From positions 124,001 through 188,000 of the forward strand of contig RBZT01000563.1 of assembly GCA_003693705.1 (NCBI GenBank): a stretch of 64,000 nucleotides of DNA. Direction: 5' to 3'. The stretch is from Polymyxa betae A26-41 (taxonomy: Eukaryota > Protista > Endomyxa: Phytomyxea). Below are positions 19,323-29,158 of this stretch, piece after piece. How positions within the stretch are numbered: position 1 is the first letter of the stretch; every line of letters begins with the position of its first letter. The notes beneath the pieces were generated by a model. It searched no databases, was not told the origin of the DNA, and was given only the letters and a program-made list of their open reading frames with translations. Both the position numbers and the translations under genes were made by a program.

Positions 19323-20037
19323 ATGACCACCATCATGAAAACCGCAAACGCACCAAAAATTGTTGAATCTGACAATCGGTCCATAATTAGCTGCGACTGG
19401 CGACGACAAGCAACCCGACATAATCGCGAATTCATGATCTCGGTTAAGGTTAACAACGATTCATTTGAATATTTAGAGGATTCGTTCACGAGATCTAATC
19501 AAGATGCGAGTTGGAGAACTGATGACAGGCGGACCGGCAGTCGTCTGCTGTACTGATAAAGAACCGATTCAATCAGTGATGGAGAAGATGCTGCACTTTC
19601 AATGCTCATCTGTCATCTTAACTGACACAGAAGATCTTGAAACACGAAAAGCATTGGCAATTATTACCATGACGGATGTGGTACTAAGCAGTATGCCCTC
19701 AAATCATCTCCTAAATTCCGTCTAGCTGAAGTGGCTATTAAATCATGACACATCGTCCGGAATCGTAATCGGGTCGCTTGTGGAGCAAAACCGAAGAACT
19801 GTGACGCAGATAGACATCGACGCCAGTATCGAAGAGGCGTCCAAGCTGATGGTGTACAAGCGTGTCCATCATCTTATTATAACTTCGAGAGACCAGCCGA
19901 CAATGGTGGGTGTAATCTCAGCATTTACAATAGCCATGGAGATGGCGGCTGCCAAGAACGCCTGGCCCTTCCCGAAAGAGTTCTTGCTGGAAAACATCGT
20001 TCAGTATCAGAACGTCGAATTCGAACAAGCGACCTGA
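19323..20037 (+). CDS. CBS-domain pair protein
   Basis: RVGELMT..VVCCTDKEPIQSVMEKM..SSVIL..LAIITMTDV and IDASIEEASKLMVYKRVHHLII..MVGVISAFTI form two CBS motifs. Two predicted short introns. Confidence 0.75.
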
Positions 20038-20363: not shown

Positions 20364-23300
20364 ATGGGGACCCAAATAGAGGGCAGAATCGTTAGCAATG
20401 CAGCATTGAACTCTGGATTTGCCACCCCAACCGCCGTTCCACCTACTCGGCACCGCTCCAGAACTCAAATAAATGTGACGCCGTCTCCTAAGGCGGTCGT
20501 AAGTTCGGGCGATTTTTCGTATTTTTCTGAATCAGGGATGAGCCCTTTGCCATATGCACTCAGTGAATTCATTGATAATTCGTAAGAATCTCTTTGGACC
20601 ACGCCGACGTCTTTGTTAATCGTTTCCGTTCGCTATGAAGGCTGGCGGCCATCAATACAAGAATGACTGCTGATTCCGGGGCGTCGTTGGCCCCAAATAT
20701 AATTCCAGGAGATATTCGTATCAGTTTTGATCGTGTTGATAAACTGAACACTGTTGTCATCTGGTAAAATGTTCTTATGGGTAGTGTTTTGGATTAATTA
20801 TGAATCGAAGGGATAATGGTTGTGGCATGGACAAGGACACACTAAAAGATTTTGCAATTTATGCTCTAAGTCCAGAAGATCGTCTTGCGAAAATGAATGC
20901 GACCGCCAAAAAGCCGCTCAAGGAGTCATCTCTCACTGAGTTTTACTCCAATCCGTTACGAGTGTATGGCTATGCGACAGCCGATTGCTGCACGTGTTCT
21001 TATACCATGCTGATAGCAATAGCAACATTAGTATGTTTGGAGTCGGTGCTAAAATGAGCGCTTTTTTTATTGGTAATGACCTAACTATGGTAACGAAATG
21101 CGCCCAGTCCGAAGAGGTTTGCAATTACTGTCTTCTTTGAACTTTTAGTAAACACGCCTTCGCTAGGTGCATGAGTTCCGATGCAACAGCGTTAAGATGA
21201 ATTCACAATACAGAGACAAGGTGGCGTGACCTCTACATCGATTGCGCTTTACTGACAATGTGTATTCAGGGAAATGAATGCTATAATCAATCCATCAATA
21301 ATCGTGCACCTGGTGCGGTTGCTGACTCCGAGCTGGCTCCTGAGGCTGCCTTGATTCCGCGACTGAAGAGCTACATTGAAGTCATGGAGAAGCAACACAA
21401 TTCGTTCACCTATGTAGTCATAAACGGCGTTAAAAGGGATTTCATTACAAGATTTGAGAAATTTCACAAAGAGATTTCTCTTAGCCTTGCCTCTGTAAAA
21501 GATCCTTCTTTTGAGATTCTGTATTTTGACTTGAACATTTGTAGGTCTATCATTGGTATCTTCATGGGCATTCCTCTATCAAGACCCCAATTGGTGGAAA
21601 CATATCAATCAGTTTAGCAGTCAATAATTTTCCCGTTTTGGATTTAAAGTATTGCGTTATGATGTCGCTATGTTATTATTTTAAAGTGGTCTCCAGATCT
21701 GTGCCCTCTGTCATCAAGGAGCAACTTCAACGCAAAAAAGACACTTTTTCGTTCGAAATTGTTGATTCGGAAAATGGTTTCGGGGTGTTTGGCTTTGTTA
21801 ACTATTTTCCCTTCAACGATGTCGAGACTTATCCGAAAGAGTCGCAAATTCTTGCTCAATGGTGCGGAACACCAGAACCTGACTCTGATGACGAAGATGA
21901 CGACAGCAATGTTAATAATGGATTGGACCCTTCTGAGCAATCGATTCATCCTATATTTTCTTGTTGGTGGCAAGGTACCCTTGATGCCCTGCCATTTCTT
22001 CCTGAACTTATCCCCGAAAGGTCGTCTTATCCCAATAACAACTGTGGAATCTTTCAAATGGATGGGTCCTTCATTTAAGCAGACGACGTCTAGATGTCGG
22101 TATCGAGTAAAGGGCTGTTTGTTTTTAGACAAGTCGTTCAAAGTAACCCAAAATAAGAGCACGTAAATGACCTCTCTTTTGCGTTACCGTAAAAAAAGCA
22201 TTCATGCTGTTTCAGATTCACTGACGATGTTCGTGCCATTTTGGAGCGACAATCTGCAACTGTCCAACTTGTCGATAATATCAGAGGCCCCATTGCGAAG
22301 CTTCCGCGATCATCCAAGACAGTTGAAGATGCATTTAAAGAATGGATCAAATCCTGCCACGATCGGTATGATAAAGAGGTTCAACTTCGTACGAAACGTC
22401 CCAAAGAAAGCCATGCACGCTGGCGAAGGTAATTTGTTTTCGCTGTGCTTTAATTTATTTAAGATTGACCTTCTTAGCTGGCTTGAGTATGAAGAAATGG
22501 TTATCTCCGGAAGTGATGCCAAATCACAGCGTGTATTCAAAACTGGTGACATTGCTCGTATCAACACGGCTAGTACTAAAAAGCTACGCTTTGGGCGTAT
22601 CATCAAGTTCCTTCGCGCGAATCCTCAGTCCGCTGATGACTTTGAAACGCACCCTGATGCCGCCTTTGTGAGTGGTAGTGATCGGGGCCTAAAATGCGAA
22701 GTCAAAGCTTTGCCCGACTTTTGTTATCCAAATCCTAAAGATAAAGTAGCTTCTGGTAATAACGTCTCGGAATGTATTGATCGTGCTTTGATTTATGTTT
22801 ACAGTCAAGCTTCGAATGATAGACAAAACGTGTTCCAAAGACGAAGTATTAAGTCAGCTGGATGAATACACAAAGAAACAGCTGAAACACATTCCTAAGA
22901 AGCTGGATTTTGATATATACGAACCTGGATCTATTCCCAAAAAAGTATCAGCTGGTTATAAGTTCCCCAATGTGGATGTCCAGGTATGTTTGTCGCCAAT
23001 TTGGTGGTCCTATTTTTATATGTCGTAGATTCTTTCCTGTACCGGTGATTCTCTCACAAGTGTTCCTTTTGAACCTACTAAGAGGCTCAGGTCTAGGCAA
23101 AGATTCTTTGTCAAAGAGCAAGGAACGCTCGTGGTAATCTCTCCTTGATTTTGCCAATCTATCATTTGGCCGATTTTTGGCAATAGGAGCTTAAATCCTT
23201 TGACGGTACTGCGAGGGACAAAAAGTTCTCGTTTTGGGAAATCGATACTCTGTTCAAGCAATGCGGCTTCTATTCCTGTGTATTCGACATTCCCAACTAT

Positions 23301-26300
23301 ATCAGCCCACTGGATGACGCCATTTTGACCAAGACCTACGAGTTCCAAGTAGTTCCCGGTCTCCCAACTGCACTGAAGTCTTCAAAACAGTCATCGTAAT
23401 CCTCTTGTCCAGTGTGATAACATTTCTTAGACTGTGACACAGAAACCCGTTGACGATCACTCTCGGTGCGCCTAGCAAGGGAGAGGTGTCAGTTCAGTTT
23501 ACTGATCAGGTTACGTTAAGAATTAATATTGTGGCTCACACTCAATTGTCTTCCAGTTTGGAAACGCATGTATACCGGATGATATTTTTCTCAACAATCT
23601 TGTCCTGTCTCATGATTATTTAATCGTTAAGCCCAAGCCTTTCAAAGTAGTGAATGGCAATGTGATTATTGCGAATATCTACACTGAGCCGAAAACAGCT
23701 GAAGGTGGCAAGTTCGTTACATTCCGCCCTAACGAAATCGTACAAATGCTGGTTGTGTATGATTCGCATAATTGATTTGTGGTCAGGCTTCATTAAATAT
23801 TGGTGTGAGAGGTCGTCCTAATGGAATTGGAACGATATCTGTCAATTTAACGCTTGGAGAGCCGTACAGTATGGTATGGGCTGATGACTGCAGGCCCCTT
23901 CGAGTCACTAGCGGTGGCAGCCTTCCATCGCTCAAAATGCAATTGGTGGACCGATATGGGCTCCCTGCTAAACCTAACCCAGCATTAAAATCGCTGACCA
24001 TCAAGCTCCTTGATCCGGACTCGAAATTAAACGGTGTCGCTGGAAAGCCGGTGCAAGTGTCAGAGCTTTCTGATCCTTCGGGTCTGATTCTGGGTCCGGT
24101 TATTCAAATCAACAGCGGGCTCGATAGGGTTACTTTGCGGGCATCGTTGTCCATCAGAAAGGCGGGCGTTTCTGTTCGCACCATTGATCTGGATCGTTTG
24201 GTTATTGTTCAACCTGGGAACATGCTGGGCTGTGTCGAACTCAGCGTTGCAAATCTGACTGCCGAGGCCTCTTCCGTCATTGCCGGATCTACACATTCAC
24301 TTCAAATCGACCTTTTTGGAGAGAATGGACAAATCTGGCCGAAACCCTACTCTGAACAAATCTGCCAGCGATATGAGCTCCACTATAATGGAAGATCGTT
24401 TCCATTAACGCCTCTTGGTATTGTGATCGTTTGTGGCGCACTACGATTCTAACCGGTCTGTATAGGGGTTTTTCCTAATGTGGTGACTTTCCCTGAAAGA
24501 ATCCAAAATGTGAATCCATTCCGAATCTGTGCCACGGTTGTCGATGTTAGTCCAGACTCTGTCAACATACCGCTCCCATGCGAAACGCAGGTGACCATCT
24601 GTCCTGACCGGGGCGTCCAATGGTCGGCAACCATAATGCGACCGATTCGATGTGGCGAACCTATCGGGGATGCCATCCAAATCAAACTTCTTGATGTGTT
24701 CAATAATCCTTGCAAGATAAATCCAAACTTGGGCATAAAGGTGAAATTTTCTGGAAATCTCACAGTTGGAGGTTCAACCTGGGCCCGATATGACTCTACA
24801 GGGACCTGTATGACCTATCCAGGTAAGCTTGATTTGTTGGGTTCATGTCTGTTAAATCAGTATAACGTTCAGGTGTTACCCTTATCGGACACGGTCCTGG
24901 CTATGGTGTGCTCTTAAACGACGAGCTGCTTGCCAAATTCGGGATTGTTGAAGGTCCCCCTTCTTCGCTGGTTTTGAATGTCTCCGACGAGACTCGAAGC
25001 TTCCAGCAGATTCTGTCAGAAGAGTAAGTTCACTTTCTTGGGTGATGACTGTGCTGACGGCTTTGTGTTAGTGTCACAAATATCGATGTCCCCATTGTTG
25101 CCTATTCGATGCGAGAATTTCACGTTCATGCTTTCGACGTCTCTGGATCGATAGTTTCTTTCCCGCCCACTGTACAGGTTGCTTGCAATGATGCCAGGAT
25201 TTCTCCGATAACAGCTCCACATCAATATAAAAAGGCATTTCAGTTGGTGTTCAACGTCCCTGCCCGCCAATCAACTGTTACTGTTACTTTTACATGTGAC
25301 CAAATTTCGAAACCAATGGTCTGTGTATTTCCTGTTCAGGTATGCTCCTCCGTCAATCTGAATTTATGCCCTGCTCCTCATCGTTTGTTCAGCCGTGGCT
25401 TCTTGGTGTATCTGCTATCAATTTGGATCCCGTTTCACCAGCCATTTCTGCCGGTGCCCCGTTTCCTGATATCTCTGGACATATTCTTAATTTCGCTGGT
25501 GACCCGGTCTCGATGGACATTAATATGTTGTCATCGTTATCCCTTGCTGTCAGGAATACTGGTTCGCATTAGATTTCTCCTCCGTTTAACACCATTGATA
25601 TTTTCTCAGAGGGGAAAGATTTGGGTCCGGAGCTGTTTGCTCCAGCAGCCGTCAGAGACGCAGGTGGAGGTTTTATTTTCCGTCCCCAGCATCCTGCCAC
25701 CATGGCAGGCACTTACACAATTTTCGTAACGTAAGTCATCTCACACTGATTGTATTTTTGTCTCTAATCTCAAGAAGGTACACCGAAGGACGTCCTGAGG
25801 TTCTCGAACTGTTGACTTCCGACCAACATCGTCTGCTGTCAAATACGTCGGTTATCAGAATTAATCCTGGTCCTGCTGCTCGTCTTCATGTTCAAGGAGA
25901 TTCCGAAGAACCATCCAATAGCGCGCGCCCGATTCCCAACAGATTAATCATTTCTGTAGAGGACGAATTCGGTATTTTTCCCGCATATGTTGAATGAGCT
26001 TTATTTACACGGGTTACAGGAAATCCGGTTCCCTATCGGTTTCAGCAAAAAGATGCAGCTGGATTGAGATTGAAGGTGCAACTGTAGCCTTCTATTGCTT
26101 GTATCATTCAAATAATGCTCTCTGTCAGTTTAGGGACGGGCATGACAAGGATCATTTAACTCGACCCTATTTATCAGTAGATGCTTCAGGGAACATCGTC
26201 GTTCAGTCTCTTGGTCCAAACCCTCATAAGCCTCTTCCGAAACAAACCTATGAACTCCTCTTCAAAGTTCCCGATTGTAACCTGAAGGGGTGCTCTCTGG

Positions 26301-27761
26301 AGTTTTACTATTCGCCCAATGTACAGCCCCATCTATTTGTCCTCACTGATTCTGACAGTGGCTAGGCTCAAGACATTACCGAATTCAGAGCACTCGTTTC
26401 ACGAGAGGAGAACCTTAGTGATGCCCTCTCTGCATTGCAGCAGGAACTGCGTCTGGCAAATCAGGCGGCGTCTGCTGTTGCATGTAATCTTCTTTGATTA
26501 TCTGCCGTTTTCGTTTCTGAGGTTTTTTCTAGCTCGGTTGAATACTTGTCGTGACCAATACCAAGCTATCGTTTCCAAGCATTTCGGGATGGGAAAAGAT
26601 GTGGATATTGCCAAGACCTTAGAAGGGAGTAGGTCTCAATTATGCACTTTACGGGCTGAAATCGCTATTTCAACTAAGCCTGCCTCTGTTGGCACTAGCA
26701 ACCACCAGAAATTGCAGAGTATGGGAAACTTTATTGGCATCATTGGATTGCTGGCCACTTGCTTCAGCGAAGAGGATTGCAGACTGGGTATGTTGTTGTC
26801 TTTAGTTTTATGTGTCTCGCTAATTATTCGATAAGTATCGTACGCTCTCTCCAATATTCTCTGTGCTCCCATTTTTCATACGATTTCTCCCGCTGAATCT
26901 GCACGCATGAACATGAGGCACTTCGCTCTGGTGTGTCCTTTACTTCCGTATCATCTCCTCTCGCTAAGTAGTTGTCAGGATGTTATGCCGAAGGATGAAT
27001 CATCTTTGTCCAAGCATCTGTCCCTTGCCAATCAATATGGACGACAGTGGAACTCCGATCCGGTCCCTCTTTTTCATCTAGTTCATCCTCATCCAAACAT
27101 TCAACAAGAGCTGTTTCACAAGATTTTTTCAAGCCTGTTACGAGGGAATTTGGCATGCAAGACATATGCTGATGGAATGGCTTTCAAGCAGTTCTGCGTC
27201 AAGCACAGGCTTAACTGTGGCACCATCTTCACTTATGGTAAAAATTTAATGCTTTTCGATTTGTTCTGACATCGTTTCTAGACGGACGCATTTTGAAAAA
27301 TAACGGAGAACTGGGCGGTACTGTTCCGTTGCTCTCCAAGCTACAGAAACGCATTGGTGAGTCGCAACTACCTATCTATTTTTTTCTGTTAATAGTGTCT
27401 TACAGGAATCGAGCCACGACAACTACGTGAGCGGCTGGTCGAATGTGAAAAACATATTCAAGATCTTGAATACCTTCAGCGTCTGGTTGTTGAGCAGCGA
27501 CAGCTGTCTGAGAAGCAAAATGCCGACAGTGATAGGATAAGCAGGTGAGACTATTCTACAAATTCTGCCGAATTTCAGCTGATACGTTTCAGTATCGAGC
27601 AGAGAATCCTAGTGACGGAAAAAGATCTCGAGAGTGTTCGGCAGCAGATTGAGAAAGCTGACCCGAACCCAGCTGGTACTACAGGCAGAAAGCGACGACG
27701 AGCTTCCTTCGGGGGTCCGACAGCTCGTGGAGATGGTCCTGCAGCCCGTCGCAGAAGATAG
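20364..27761 (+). CDS. SMCHD1: SMCHD1-like protein (GHKL ATPase, long linker, SMC hinge)
   Basis: Spliced motifs: SGDFSYFSESGMSPLPYALSEFIDNS; VVIWDNGCGM; NSNISMFGVGAKMSAFFIG; SFTYVVINGV; YHWYLHG; NYFPFNDVETYP; FSCWWQGRLIP; RVKGCLFLDKSFKVTQNK; FKEWIKSCHDRYDKEV. Hinge: FIGIIGLLA...DPVPLFHLV...IFSSLLRGNL...CGTIFTYDGRILKNNGELGG. Basic C-terminal tail RKRRR..ARRRR. All occur in the same order as in vertebrate SMCHD1. Confidence 0.88.
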
Positions 27762-27820: not shown

Positions 27821-29158
27821 TCATAGTTCATTATCTCCGGAGACTGAACGCATCAATCTGGCTCTTCTTCTGCCCATTCGTATGCCTCGCCATAGACCAA
27901 TGAAAGCGAGAATCGCCAATAACACGTAAAGCAAAATGAGCCAAGTCCCAGCTCCTAATCCGTATACGACTGGTTGAGCTGTGGGTACAGGTTCTGGATC
28001 TTTGCAATAATAAACCTTAGATTCTTCGCTGTAAATCGTCTCTACAGTGCATCGTTGGTAATTATCAATGCAGAATCCGGGGACATTGCGATTATCACTG
28101 TTCTCGCAATTACAGATGCAATCCTTGAAATCGAATGTGCCTCTAGCACACCCTGCTTTCGGCGGAAGACATGAATTTTCCTCTGCACGATTACTACAAG
28201 TTAGCAATTCGTGGATTAGATGAATGTCCTTGGGTGTTTGCATGTACGAGACGAGCTGAGCATTTGTGACAATCCAGACATTCTCAAAGTCAAGGACTTG
28301 GCCGATGAACTTGCTGAAGGCTTCCATGGCGGTATCATCTTCCAGCAGATTTTTGGACAGCGGGATGGAAACCGGAGCACGATTTCCATAGAAGCTTGCT
28401 GCAAAGTTGAATGCCAGTAATGAAGCCCAATCCGGATTGGAACTTAGGGCATTGCCAAGTGAGACATCGCTTTGACCGCCATTTCCTGTCTTGTTGTGCC
28501 TGTCTCGAAATTCCCAAACAGGAATCTCAATCAGTCCAGGATGCCGCTCTCGAGCATCACACATAACATGGGGATCGCTGCAATCCTCAGCAATTCCAAA
28601 ATCCATCGTATATGGCCAATGCCGTTCGCCAGGGTTTTGAACTGCTTCCAGAATACTGTGGTCGTATTTGAATCCAATCTGGCCCAGGATCGATCGGGTC
28701 CCGATTCCGTTGCTCCATTTCGGCGCGCGAAACCCTATGATTTGATCAGCAGGGATCTGTGAGCTTTGAACAAGCCAATCCCTGGCCTTGGTAATCTGCG
28801 ATTGGATATCGCCTCCTTCGGCAGCTGCTGTGACAGCAATTTCAAAGTAACGGTTGAAAGCATTACGAATCATGTCGGCATTCGAATGTTCACGAATGTA
28901 CCATGTAATTGGAATATTGCAGCCATTCAGGTTTTTATGCCTCCTCGTCAGTTTCACCATTCGGGAGAACGTCGATTGTGTCATGAGCTCGTCCGTATAC
29001 AGAATAACGAACTGTGGCGTATTATCGCGATCGAAACGCCCAGGCGATGTGGTTGAAGGGCATATACAGGATGGCAACTGACATTCATCTGGGCATTGAT
29101 CGTCTGCCAGAATCACAGTAATAGTAACAAAGCATATCCATAACGCTTTTCTCTTCAT
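27821..29158 (-). CDS. Secreted, membrane-anchored CE4 (chitin/polysaccharide deacetylase-like) protein, predicted inactive
   Basis: Intronless 445 aa ORF. Signal peptide, CQLPSCICPS, TPQFVIL, NLNGCNIPITWY, IIGFRAP, WPYTMDFG, PGLIEIP, GNRAP and VWIVTNAQLVSYMQTP match insect/fungal-type CDA-like proteins. Followed by a Cys-rich stalk, a TM helix and a basic cytoplasmic tail. Confidence 0.85.
   Translation of the reverse strand: MKRKALWICFVTITVILADDQCPDECQLPSCICPSTTSPGRFDRDNTPQFVILYTDELMTQSTFSRMVKLTRRHKNLNGCNIPITWYIREHSNADMIRNAFNRYFEIAVTAAAEGGDIQSQITKARDWLVQSSQIPADQIIGFRAPKWSNGIGTRSILGQIGFKYDHSILEAVQNPGERHWPYTMDFGIAEDCSDPHVMCDARERHPGLIEIPVWEFRDRHNKTGNGGQSDVSLGNALSSNPDWASLLAFNFAASFYGNRAPVSIPLSKNLLEDDTAMEAFSKFIGQVLDFENVWIVTNAQLVSYMQTPKDIHLIHELLTCSNRAEENSCLPPKAGCARGTFDFKDCICNCENSDNRNVPGFCIDNYQRCTVETIYSEESKVYYCKDPEPVPTAQPVVYGLGAGTWLILLYVLLAILAFIGLWRGIRMGRRRARLMRSVSGDNEL

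Follow-up and report, generated by a model that had tools for sequence, protein, structure and literature searches.

Gene structure and transcript evidence

We analyzed a stretch of 64,000 nucleotides from the genome of Polymyxa betae A26-41 (contig RBZT01000563.1 of assembly GCA_003693705.1, positions 124,001 to 188,000 of the forward strand), hereafter called the window. On the plus strand of the window, positions 20364 to 27761 hold numerous short open frames, distributed over the three phases and joined by very short GT..AG introns. When the frames were spliced, a single gene was obtained, consisting of 32 exons and 31 introns with a coding sequence (CDS) of 5880 nt and a product of 1959 amino acids (aa). 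This gene very probably encodes a nuclear chromatin ATPase of the SMCHD1 family in this plasmodiophorid. The features of the SMCHD1/GMI1 family are present in one polypeptide, namely the GHKL motifs I-IV with the catalytic glutamate, the SMCHD1_S5 domain, an array of immunoglobulin-like (Ig-like) domains and a hinge with helical arms.

The splice model came from dynamic programming with a homologue as guide, and it was then corrected from RNA joints and from the alignment with P0002, a database protein of 1948 aa (UniParc UPI0006B2C1ED). The start codon lies at 20364, with an in-frame stop 63 nt upstream of it, and the stop codon at 27759-27761. All introns have GT..AG ends and measure 44-59 nt (median 48), and the frame stays open through the 32 exons with no internal stop and one terminal stop when phases and junction codons are checked. 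Two of the introns (21649-21696 and 26931-26978) are in frame and free of stop codons; they are invisible from the open frames and were revealed by RNA only. The boundary between exons 28 and 29 was set from the sequence for GT..AG ends, and the phase check used a boundary 2 nt further left; CDS length and frame are the same either way. For the first three exons and those past 27016, the model is based on splice consensus and collinearity with P0002, which aligns collinearly with the window in tblastn from 20460 to 27701 (33-85 % identity per exon). An earlier note on this DNA, made from the sequence alone, had the start at 20364 and the stop at 27761 right, and the ATPase motifs it quoted (ALSEFIDNS, DNGCGM and FGVGAK) are all in place in one consistent spliced frame. 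Its count of about 20 introns was too low, as the splice model gives 31.

Transcripts of the gene were found in public data. Of the words sampled from the gene, a share of about 0.65 was present in six small public runs belonging to two studies; by our estimate, spliced RNA that loses introns and junction-spanning words should give about this value. RNA-derived contigs were compared with positions 21017-27016, that is, from exon 4 (with FGVGAK) to the first hinge exons. In one run (X2), a single contig of 6877 nt covers every exon of this stretch, with every intron removed at its GT..AG ends. Two contigs from a run of the other study (X1) have the same joints, and the 15 listed joints and all 30 of 30 depth bins agree with the splice model. 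The first X1 contig reaches approximately 80 nt upstream of the ATG, as calculated from the record coordinates on the exon model.

The RNA contigs of both studies also extend 1.2-1.7 kb beyond the stop codon (by arithmetic on the record coordinates) into a convergent gene on the minus strand, and an X1 contig retains introns 26788-26835 and 26931-26978. These contigs point to convergent transcripts that overlap (antisense read-through) or to pre-mRNA among the assembled RNA. Because the contigs run past the stop and X1 keeps two introns, contig continuity alone does not prove one transcript; the case is completed by the uninterrupted reading frame and the full-length homologues. The ATPase exon, the transducer, the middle region and the first hinge exons are thus part of one spliced molecule, and the gene is expressed. 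The earlier note had claimed one transcript and had proposed RNA data as a check for ATPase and hinge exons on separate ones; both lie on one spliced contig, in a continuous frame that is collinear with P0002.

N-terminal ATPase and S5 transducer

Whole-protein analyses were performed with the database orthologues P0002 and P0004 (the latter from Plasmodiophora brassicae) as full-length stand-ins, and the exons of the window were searched singly. In an exon-by-exon alignment with a fish SMCHD1, the catalytic glutamate and the asparagine of motif I, DNGCGM, FGVGAK and SFT are conserved, as are VYHWYLHG, CWWQGRLIP, T-x-NK-x-x-F and W-x-K-x-CH. The transducer motif CWWQ-G-RLIP spans the intron at 21975-22020, and WIKSCHDRYDK is located in exon 10. 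The likeness to the animal protein that had been noticed at the level of motifs therefore stands, the catalytic and transducer motifs aligning with fish SMCHD1 residue for residue.

Pfam HATPase_c_3 scored 36-40 bits on P0002 and P0004 and 17 bits on exon 4 alone. The family-specific model SMCHD1_S5 (PF22899, cut-off 27) reached 42.5 bits on the open frame of exons 7-8, in which the in-frame intron is read through, and 97, 76 and 88 bits on the homologues P0002, P0004 and P0008, respectively. In a six-frame scan of the genome, SMCHD1_S5 matched only at this locus (48.4 and 40.9 bits), which is the only such locus in the assembly; the gene is single-copy. When the open frame of exons 7-8 was compared with all PDB sequences, the sole match was mouse SMCHD1 (6MW7).

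An N-terminal profile of P0002, P0004 and P0008 also matched 6MW7 in the PDB, with 246 bits and E = 5.4e-72 over 468 residues (chain positions 92-559). Next came HtpG/Hsp90 at E >= 1.5e-3; the best 60 PDB matches contained neither MORC nor MutL, and no chain of these two scored better than E = 0.19. This bears out the view that the ATPase is of SMCHD1 type and does not belong with MORC or MutL. No match to Morc6_S5 was found in the genome by six-frame scan, which is insensitive for intron-dense genes.

Absence of the ubiquitin-like domain

The N-terminal ubiquitin-like domain (UBL) of animal SMCHD1 is absent. The UBL of the mouse protein comprises residues 25-110 (PMC7458401), and the profile alignment to 6MW7 begins after it. 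In the P. betae protein the first conserved strand begins after only 35 residues, and P0002 and P0004 are equally short. The in-frame stop 63 nt before the ATG and the end of a CBS-domain gene about 325 nt before it leave the same picture. To judge from sequence, the missing UBL is a real architectural difference from animal SMCHD1, and it had been overlooked by the earlier note. Without a UBL, dimerization of the heads in the protist protein would therefore have to proceed without the domain swap of the mouse structure.

Coiled coils, SMC hinge and basic tail

The evidence as a whole identifies the C-terminal domain as an SMC hinge, closest in sequence to SMCHD1 among the structures that have been solved. 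A profile (A2) of P0002, P0004, P0008 and the hinge frame of the window had one significant match in the PDB, the mouse SMCHD1 hinge 6N64 (E = 6.7e-11); the second match was the plant protein DMS3 at E = 0.52. This profile included the translation of the in-frame intron 26931-26978 (16 residues). Exon 29 of the window matched the hinge of P0004 at E = 2e-18, and the sequence CGTIFTY-D-GRILKNNGELGG reads across the intron at 27238-27281.

The hinge fold was modeled on the orthologue P0002. The AlphaFold model of its residues 1640-1885 has two long helices flanking a domain of mixed alpha/beta structure, with a mean predicted local distance difference test (pLDDT) score of 71.7. When it was compared with the PDB by Foldseek, all 50 of the 50 listed matches were hinge-containing (SMC1-SMC3, SMCHD1 6N64, condensin, bacterial SMC and DMS3), and 6N64 matched at E = 2.2e-6. 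Exon 26 has no proline or glycine and its counterpart in P0002 is modeled as a long helix (H9-31); exon 31 is charged, with one proline or glycine, and its P0002 counterpart is modeled as helix H219-245. In exon 32, 14 of the 55 residues are lysine or arginine, concentrated in 27687-27758. Basic tails also terminate P0002, P0008 and fish SMCHD1, and the tail is likely to act as a nuclear localization signal. The hinge, the two coiled coils and the basic tail are found in the order given by the earlier note, as are the other parts of the full-length SMCHD1-type protein it described (ATPase, S5 and beta-rich middle).

Middle region

The middle region of approximately 1000 residues is an array of Ig-like domains, as indicated by tests on exon 17 and on the last domains. 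Exon 17 (23787-24416, 210 aa) is predicted to have an all-beta fold (pLDDT 74.7). The nearest solved folds to this model are tandem macroglobulin/Ig-like domains, with a weak E-value of about 1e-3. In a comparison with the ESM Atlas, a cluster of chordate SMCHD1 came first (Ig_SMCHD1_7th/8th+hinge; template modeling score 0.50), and generic bacterial Ig-like proteins score near it. When the protist and fish middle regions were aligned with hhalign, a collinear match was obtained over the ~270 columns that immediately precede the coiled coil (90.7 % probability, E = 1.2e-6). The earlier description of this region as a long beta-rich linker was correct as to its beta-rich nature; it is not a mere linker, being an array of Ig-like beta-sandwich domains instead. 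All features of the gene are listed in Table 1.

Table 1 Exons and predicted features of the SMCHD1-family gene of P. betae (positions in the window)
Feature	Position	Strand	Exons, motifs and basis
Exons 1-8	20364-20581, 20641-20763, 20811-20963, 21017-21116, 21167-21220, 21270-21494, 21545-21648, 21697-21974	+	
Exons 9-16	22021-22162, 22216-22428, 22478-22755, 22805-22983, 23029-23133, 23187-23395, 23443-23509, 23557-23739	+	
Exons 17-24	23787-24417, 24466-24822, 24873-25023, 25072-25339, 25393-25561, 25610-25730, 25778-25971, 26020-26075	+	
Exons 25-32	26129-26320, 26366-26483, 26533-26787, 26836-26930, 26979-27237, 27282-27356, 27406-27544, 27593-27761	+	
GHKL (Bergerat-fold) ATPase	20460-21494	+	Exons 1-6; exon alignment with fish SMCHD1, profile against 6MW7
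Motif I, ALSEFIDN-S	20544-20581	+	End of exon 1; E at 20565-20567, N at 20577-20579
Motif II, DNGCGM	20812-20829	+	Exon 3
Motif III, FGVGAK	21036-21053	+	Exon 4
Motif IV, SFT	21402-21410	+	Exon 6
S5 transducer, SMCHD1-type	21545-22428	+	Exons 7-10; CWWQGRLIP, T-x-NK-x-x-F, WIKSCH..YDK
Region corresponding in position to the animal BAH domain	22478-22983	+	Exons 11-12; collinear with P0002 and P0004
Ig-like beta-sandwich array	23029-26320	+	Exons 13-25; fold of exon 17, hhalign of last domains
Helical (coiled-coil) arm before hinge	26366-26711	+	Exon 26 and start of exon 27
SMC hinge	26712-27330	+	End of exon 27 to exon 30; G-x6-G-x2-GG signature in exon 30
Helical (coiled-coil) arm after hinge	27331-27686	+	Exons 30-32
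Basic C-terminal tail, RKRRR ... RRRR	27687-27758	+	Exon 32

The gene is flanked upstream on the plus strand by a gene with two CBS-domain open frames (19504-20037; 17.5 and 24.4 bits). Downstream, the convergent intron-free gene of 445 aa (27821-29158, minus strand) had no Pfam match at E <= 0.01.

Relatives of the protein

When the 143-aa frame of exons 7-8, which carried the in-frame intron 21649-21696, was searched exhaustively with HMMER, three proteins were recovered at E <= 0.001, including P0002. A word-indexed search with P0002 matched P0004 (P. brassicae PBRA_006002, 1929 aa; 31 % identical across 97 % of the query length), a fish SMCHD1 (E = 5e-42) and the unnamed protein P0008 (2321 aa). 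P0004 is present in NCBI and UniRef; its only annotations are hypothetical protein and the UniRef name 'SMCHD1 ribosomal S5 domain-containing'. The nearest named match is from P. brassicae, and the organism is a plasmodiophorid, in accordance with the unicellular eukaryote that had been proposed. In the indexed protein searches, full-length P0002 and a four-sequence profile returned the same six proteins, and the core of residues 405-480 returned only the query. A language-model feature search with P0002 gave SMCHD1-named clusters at 0.99 and 0.97 (one of them labeled Chordata) versus 0.81 for a streptophyte cluster, the last serving as a lead only.

P0008 bridges the plasmodiophorid and animal hinges in the profile searches. 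It is encoded without introns on a 21.7-kb metagenomic contig (ENA sample ERZ1426575), amid packed genes (glycogen phosphorylase, GYF/PIN_4), and its source is probably a picoeukaryote with a compact genome. Two other database entries, P0001 (139 aa; window 21638-22078) and P0003 (95 aa), are prokaryote-style open reading frame calls on eukaryotic DNA. P0001 begins within the intron at 21649-21696 and continues into that at 21975-22020, and entries of this kind can mislead homology searches. A contig of 821 nt in another assembly (AYZY01075424.1, GCA_000510975.1) is 100 % identical to positions 21487-22307 of the window, introns included; the parasite DNA in that assembly is probably contamination.

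Points against the assignment and alternative explanations

Several observations weigh against the assignment to the SMCHD1 family or against a function like that of SMCHD1. With clean exons and plasmodiophorid rows only (profile A10), 6N64 was still the first match of the hinge, at E = 0.023, and the strength of the A2 match depends on the bridging sequence P0008. Pfam SMC_hinge scored 41 bits on the fish protein and had no match in the protist proteins or in the hinge frame of the window; the hinge exon alone had no PDB or Pfam match, and its comparison with the fish hinge by BLASTP was not significant. The alignment behind the hinge model included fish SMCHD1 rows, and its pLDDT was only 71.7. 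In human SMCHD1 a BAH domain is mapped to residues 571-688 (bioRxiv 10.64898/2026.02.05.704097) and makes up, together with IGL-1, a DNA-binding module; exons 11-12 were assigned their position from this map. The Pfam BAH model had no match in exons 11-12, nor in fish SMCHD1; BLASTP of the exons 11-12 region against the fish BAH/IGL-1 region was not significant, and the domain was also undetectable by hhalign between the protist and fish middle regions. The lack of a UBL belongs here as well, given its role in mammalian SMCHD1, where it is required for N-terminal dimerization and chromatin localization (PMC8286825, PMC7458401). In addition, the RNA comparison covered 21017-27016, and the first three and the last exons lie outside this stretch.

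The function proposed for the protist protein is drawn from homology, and the silencing system that the earlier note saw as operating here, possibly on repeats or effector genes, is a candidate function only. The note had also called for a survey of HP1, H3K9 methyltransferases and DNA methyltransferases (DNMTs). Six-frame scans of the genome matched SET domains at least 26 times and chromodomains at least 150 times, and gave no match to C5-DNMT, Pre-SET or chromo-shadow; these are weak negatives, as intron-dense genes are easily missed, and the scan with HATPase_c_3 (PF13589) missed the SMCHD1-family gene itself. Given these negatives, the mammalian context of 5-methylcytosine (5mC) and HP1/LRIF1 may be absent here, which also counts against a mammalian type of function. 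Many of the chromodomain matches lie on short contigs, and their source is probably chromovirus-type retrotransposons.

Among the alternatives, the least probable is that the ATPase and the hinge belong to two neighboring genes which were joined wrongly in the gene model or during contig assembly. Non-stranded RNA assemblies can fuse neighbors, and the contigs do enter the convergent downstream gene. However, the frame is open over all 31 junctions with one terminal stop, one contig has every intron of the compared stretch removed, the parts follow one another in the same way in two independent full-length database proteins (1948 and 1929 aa), and no intergenic gap is seen, the introns being at most 59 nt. 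It is also highly improbable that the gene encodes a MORC or another GHKL ATPase with an unrelated C-terminus, whose resemblance to SMCHD1 would reflect only general GHKL similarity; this candidate was rejected on the ranking of the PDB profile matches and on the hinge fold. The negative Pfam SMC_hinge result is in keeping with it, and HATPase_c_3 is common to MORC, MutL and SMCHD1, but SMCHD1_S5 is specific to the family and far above its cut-off, the 246-bit match to 6MW7 extends over 468 residues with MORC and MutL missing from the best 60 (none better than E = 0.19), and a hinge fold and a profile match to the SMCHD1 hinge are present in a genome whose scan gave no Morc6_S5 match. As little probability is given to a non-native gene, derived from host-plant or contaminant DNA or from recent transfer out of an animal or plant. 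P. betae is an obligate root parasite whose genome was assembled from infected material (PMC6328671), and an identical fragment occurs in GCA_000510975.1. The 31 introns of 44-59 nt nevertheless fit the dense, very short introns elsewhere in the window, and the GC content resembles that of the rest of it. Moreover, the P. brassicae orthologue, 31 % identical to P0002 over 97 %, fits vertical descent within plasmodiophorids, and identity to fish SMCHD1 is only 24-28 %.

A different kind of alternative accepts the same protein and changes its main job to DNA double-strand-break repair or homologous recombination instead of heritable silencing of genes or repeats, a role that has been proposed for Arabidopsis GMI1 and reported for human SMCHD1 too. 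GMI1, described as the probable orthologue in Arabidopsis, is induced by radiation and has been linked to homologous recombination (PMC3707822, PMC3753908), SMCHD1 gathers at sites of DNA damage (PMC4004971), and the genome gave no DNMT, Pre-SET or chromo-shadow match. On the other side, no sequence feature distinguishes repair from silencing, the two roles are not mutually exclusive, and genome scans of this kind have little sensitivity where introns are dense, PF13589 having missed this very gene. Both roles would be plausible for the protein, and we consider repair as the main one rather unlikely. An SMCHD1-family chromatin ATPase remains our reading of the locus.

Proposed mechanism and significance

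By analogy with mammalian SMCHD1 (PMC7458401, bioRxiv 10.64898/2026.02.05.704097), two chains would be held together permanently by the hinge, which would also bind nucleic acid. Binding of ATP would join the two GHKL heads, and hydrolysis would release them. With a hinge tether and ATP-cycled heads, the dimer would therefore serve as a clamp or bridge under the control of ATP, compacting or insulating chromatin, as far as mammalian biochemistry can be carried over to this protein.

We tentatively propose that the plasmodiophorid SMCHD1 might be an ancestral UBL-less form, with heads that dimerize without the domain swap essential in mammals, in a genome that perhaps lacks cytosine methylation and HP1-type readers; this is possible, and it could well turn out otherwise. 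If it is true, a hinge-tethered ATP-gated DNA clamp predates the mammalian targeting modules and works independently of them, and the family traces to an early eukaryotic ancestor common to Rhizaria, animals and plants. SMCHD1 has been studied almost only in mammals, where its mutations cause FSHD2 (facioscapulohumeral muscular dystrophy type 2) as well as arhinia and its mechanism is debated. An expressed orthologue without the UBL would be a natural minimal version for dissecting the parts needed in ATP-dependent dimerization and DNA compaction. It would also give a data point from Rhizaria for dating the fusion of GHKL and hinge, and it nominates a candidate chromatin organizer in the plasmodiophorids, which are repeat-rich, unculturable crop parasites.

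In the literature search no paper was found on SMCHD1 in protists, nor on P0002 or P0004. Conservation of SMCHD1 has been described for vertebrates and higher plants (PMC3753908). The fusion of a MORC-type GHKL+S5 module to a hinge and coiled coil was described by Iyer, Abhiman and Aravind (2008), who termed it a 'distinct ancient eukaryotic lineage' (PMC2292703). With that lineage already described and P. brassicae PBRA_006002 publicly domain-annotated, the novelty seen in the earlier note was overstated.

Comparison with known systems

Among the closest known proteins are P0004 and P0002, which are full-length orthologues from other species with the same architecture, also without a UBL. The protein resembles vertebrate SMCHD1 in the order of its parts and in size (1959 aa versus about 2000 aa). 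It shares the GHKL motifs, including a catalytic glutamate equivalent to E147, the SMCHD1-specific S5 with the GRLIP and NK motifs (6MW7), the Ig-like middle, the glycine signature of the hinge with its flanking helices (6N64) and the basic tail. It differs in that the mouse protein has a UBL and the protist protein has none, in a hinge too divergent for Pfam SMC_hinge and in an overall identity of only about 24-28 %. It also belongs to a protist without X inactivation, imprinting or D4Z4, and possibly without 5mC machinery.

Among plant proteins, Arabidopsis GMI1 is described as a GHKL ATPase with a C-terminal SMC hinge (PMC5651269), and by this description it shares the GHKL ATPase and hinge architecture of the P. 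betae protein. DMS3, which consists of the hinge only, was the second PDB match of the hinge profile, far behind the mouse hinge (E = 0.52 versus 6.7e-11), and was among the fold matches. MORC ATPases have a GHKL+S5 module of the same superfamily and compact chromatin through ATP-dependent head dimerization (PMC5651269, PMC2292703). They lack an SMC hinge, whereas the P. betae protein has one and is without the CW finger or the Morc6_S5 signature.

The canonical SMC proteins (cohesin, condensin and SMC5/6), which dimerize by the hinge and function in DNA looping or compaction, share the hinge fold with flanking helices. Their head is of ABC type and split between the termini, whereas the ATPase of the protist protein is of GHKL type and wholly N-terminal, with a beta-rich middle in place of a long antiparallel coiled coil. 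Canonical SMC hinges were found by six-frame scan at four other loci of the genome. The UBL-less protein of P. betae extends a known family in a modest way and is not a new kind of system.

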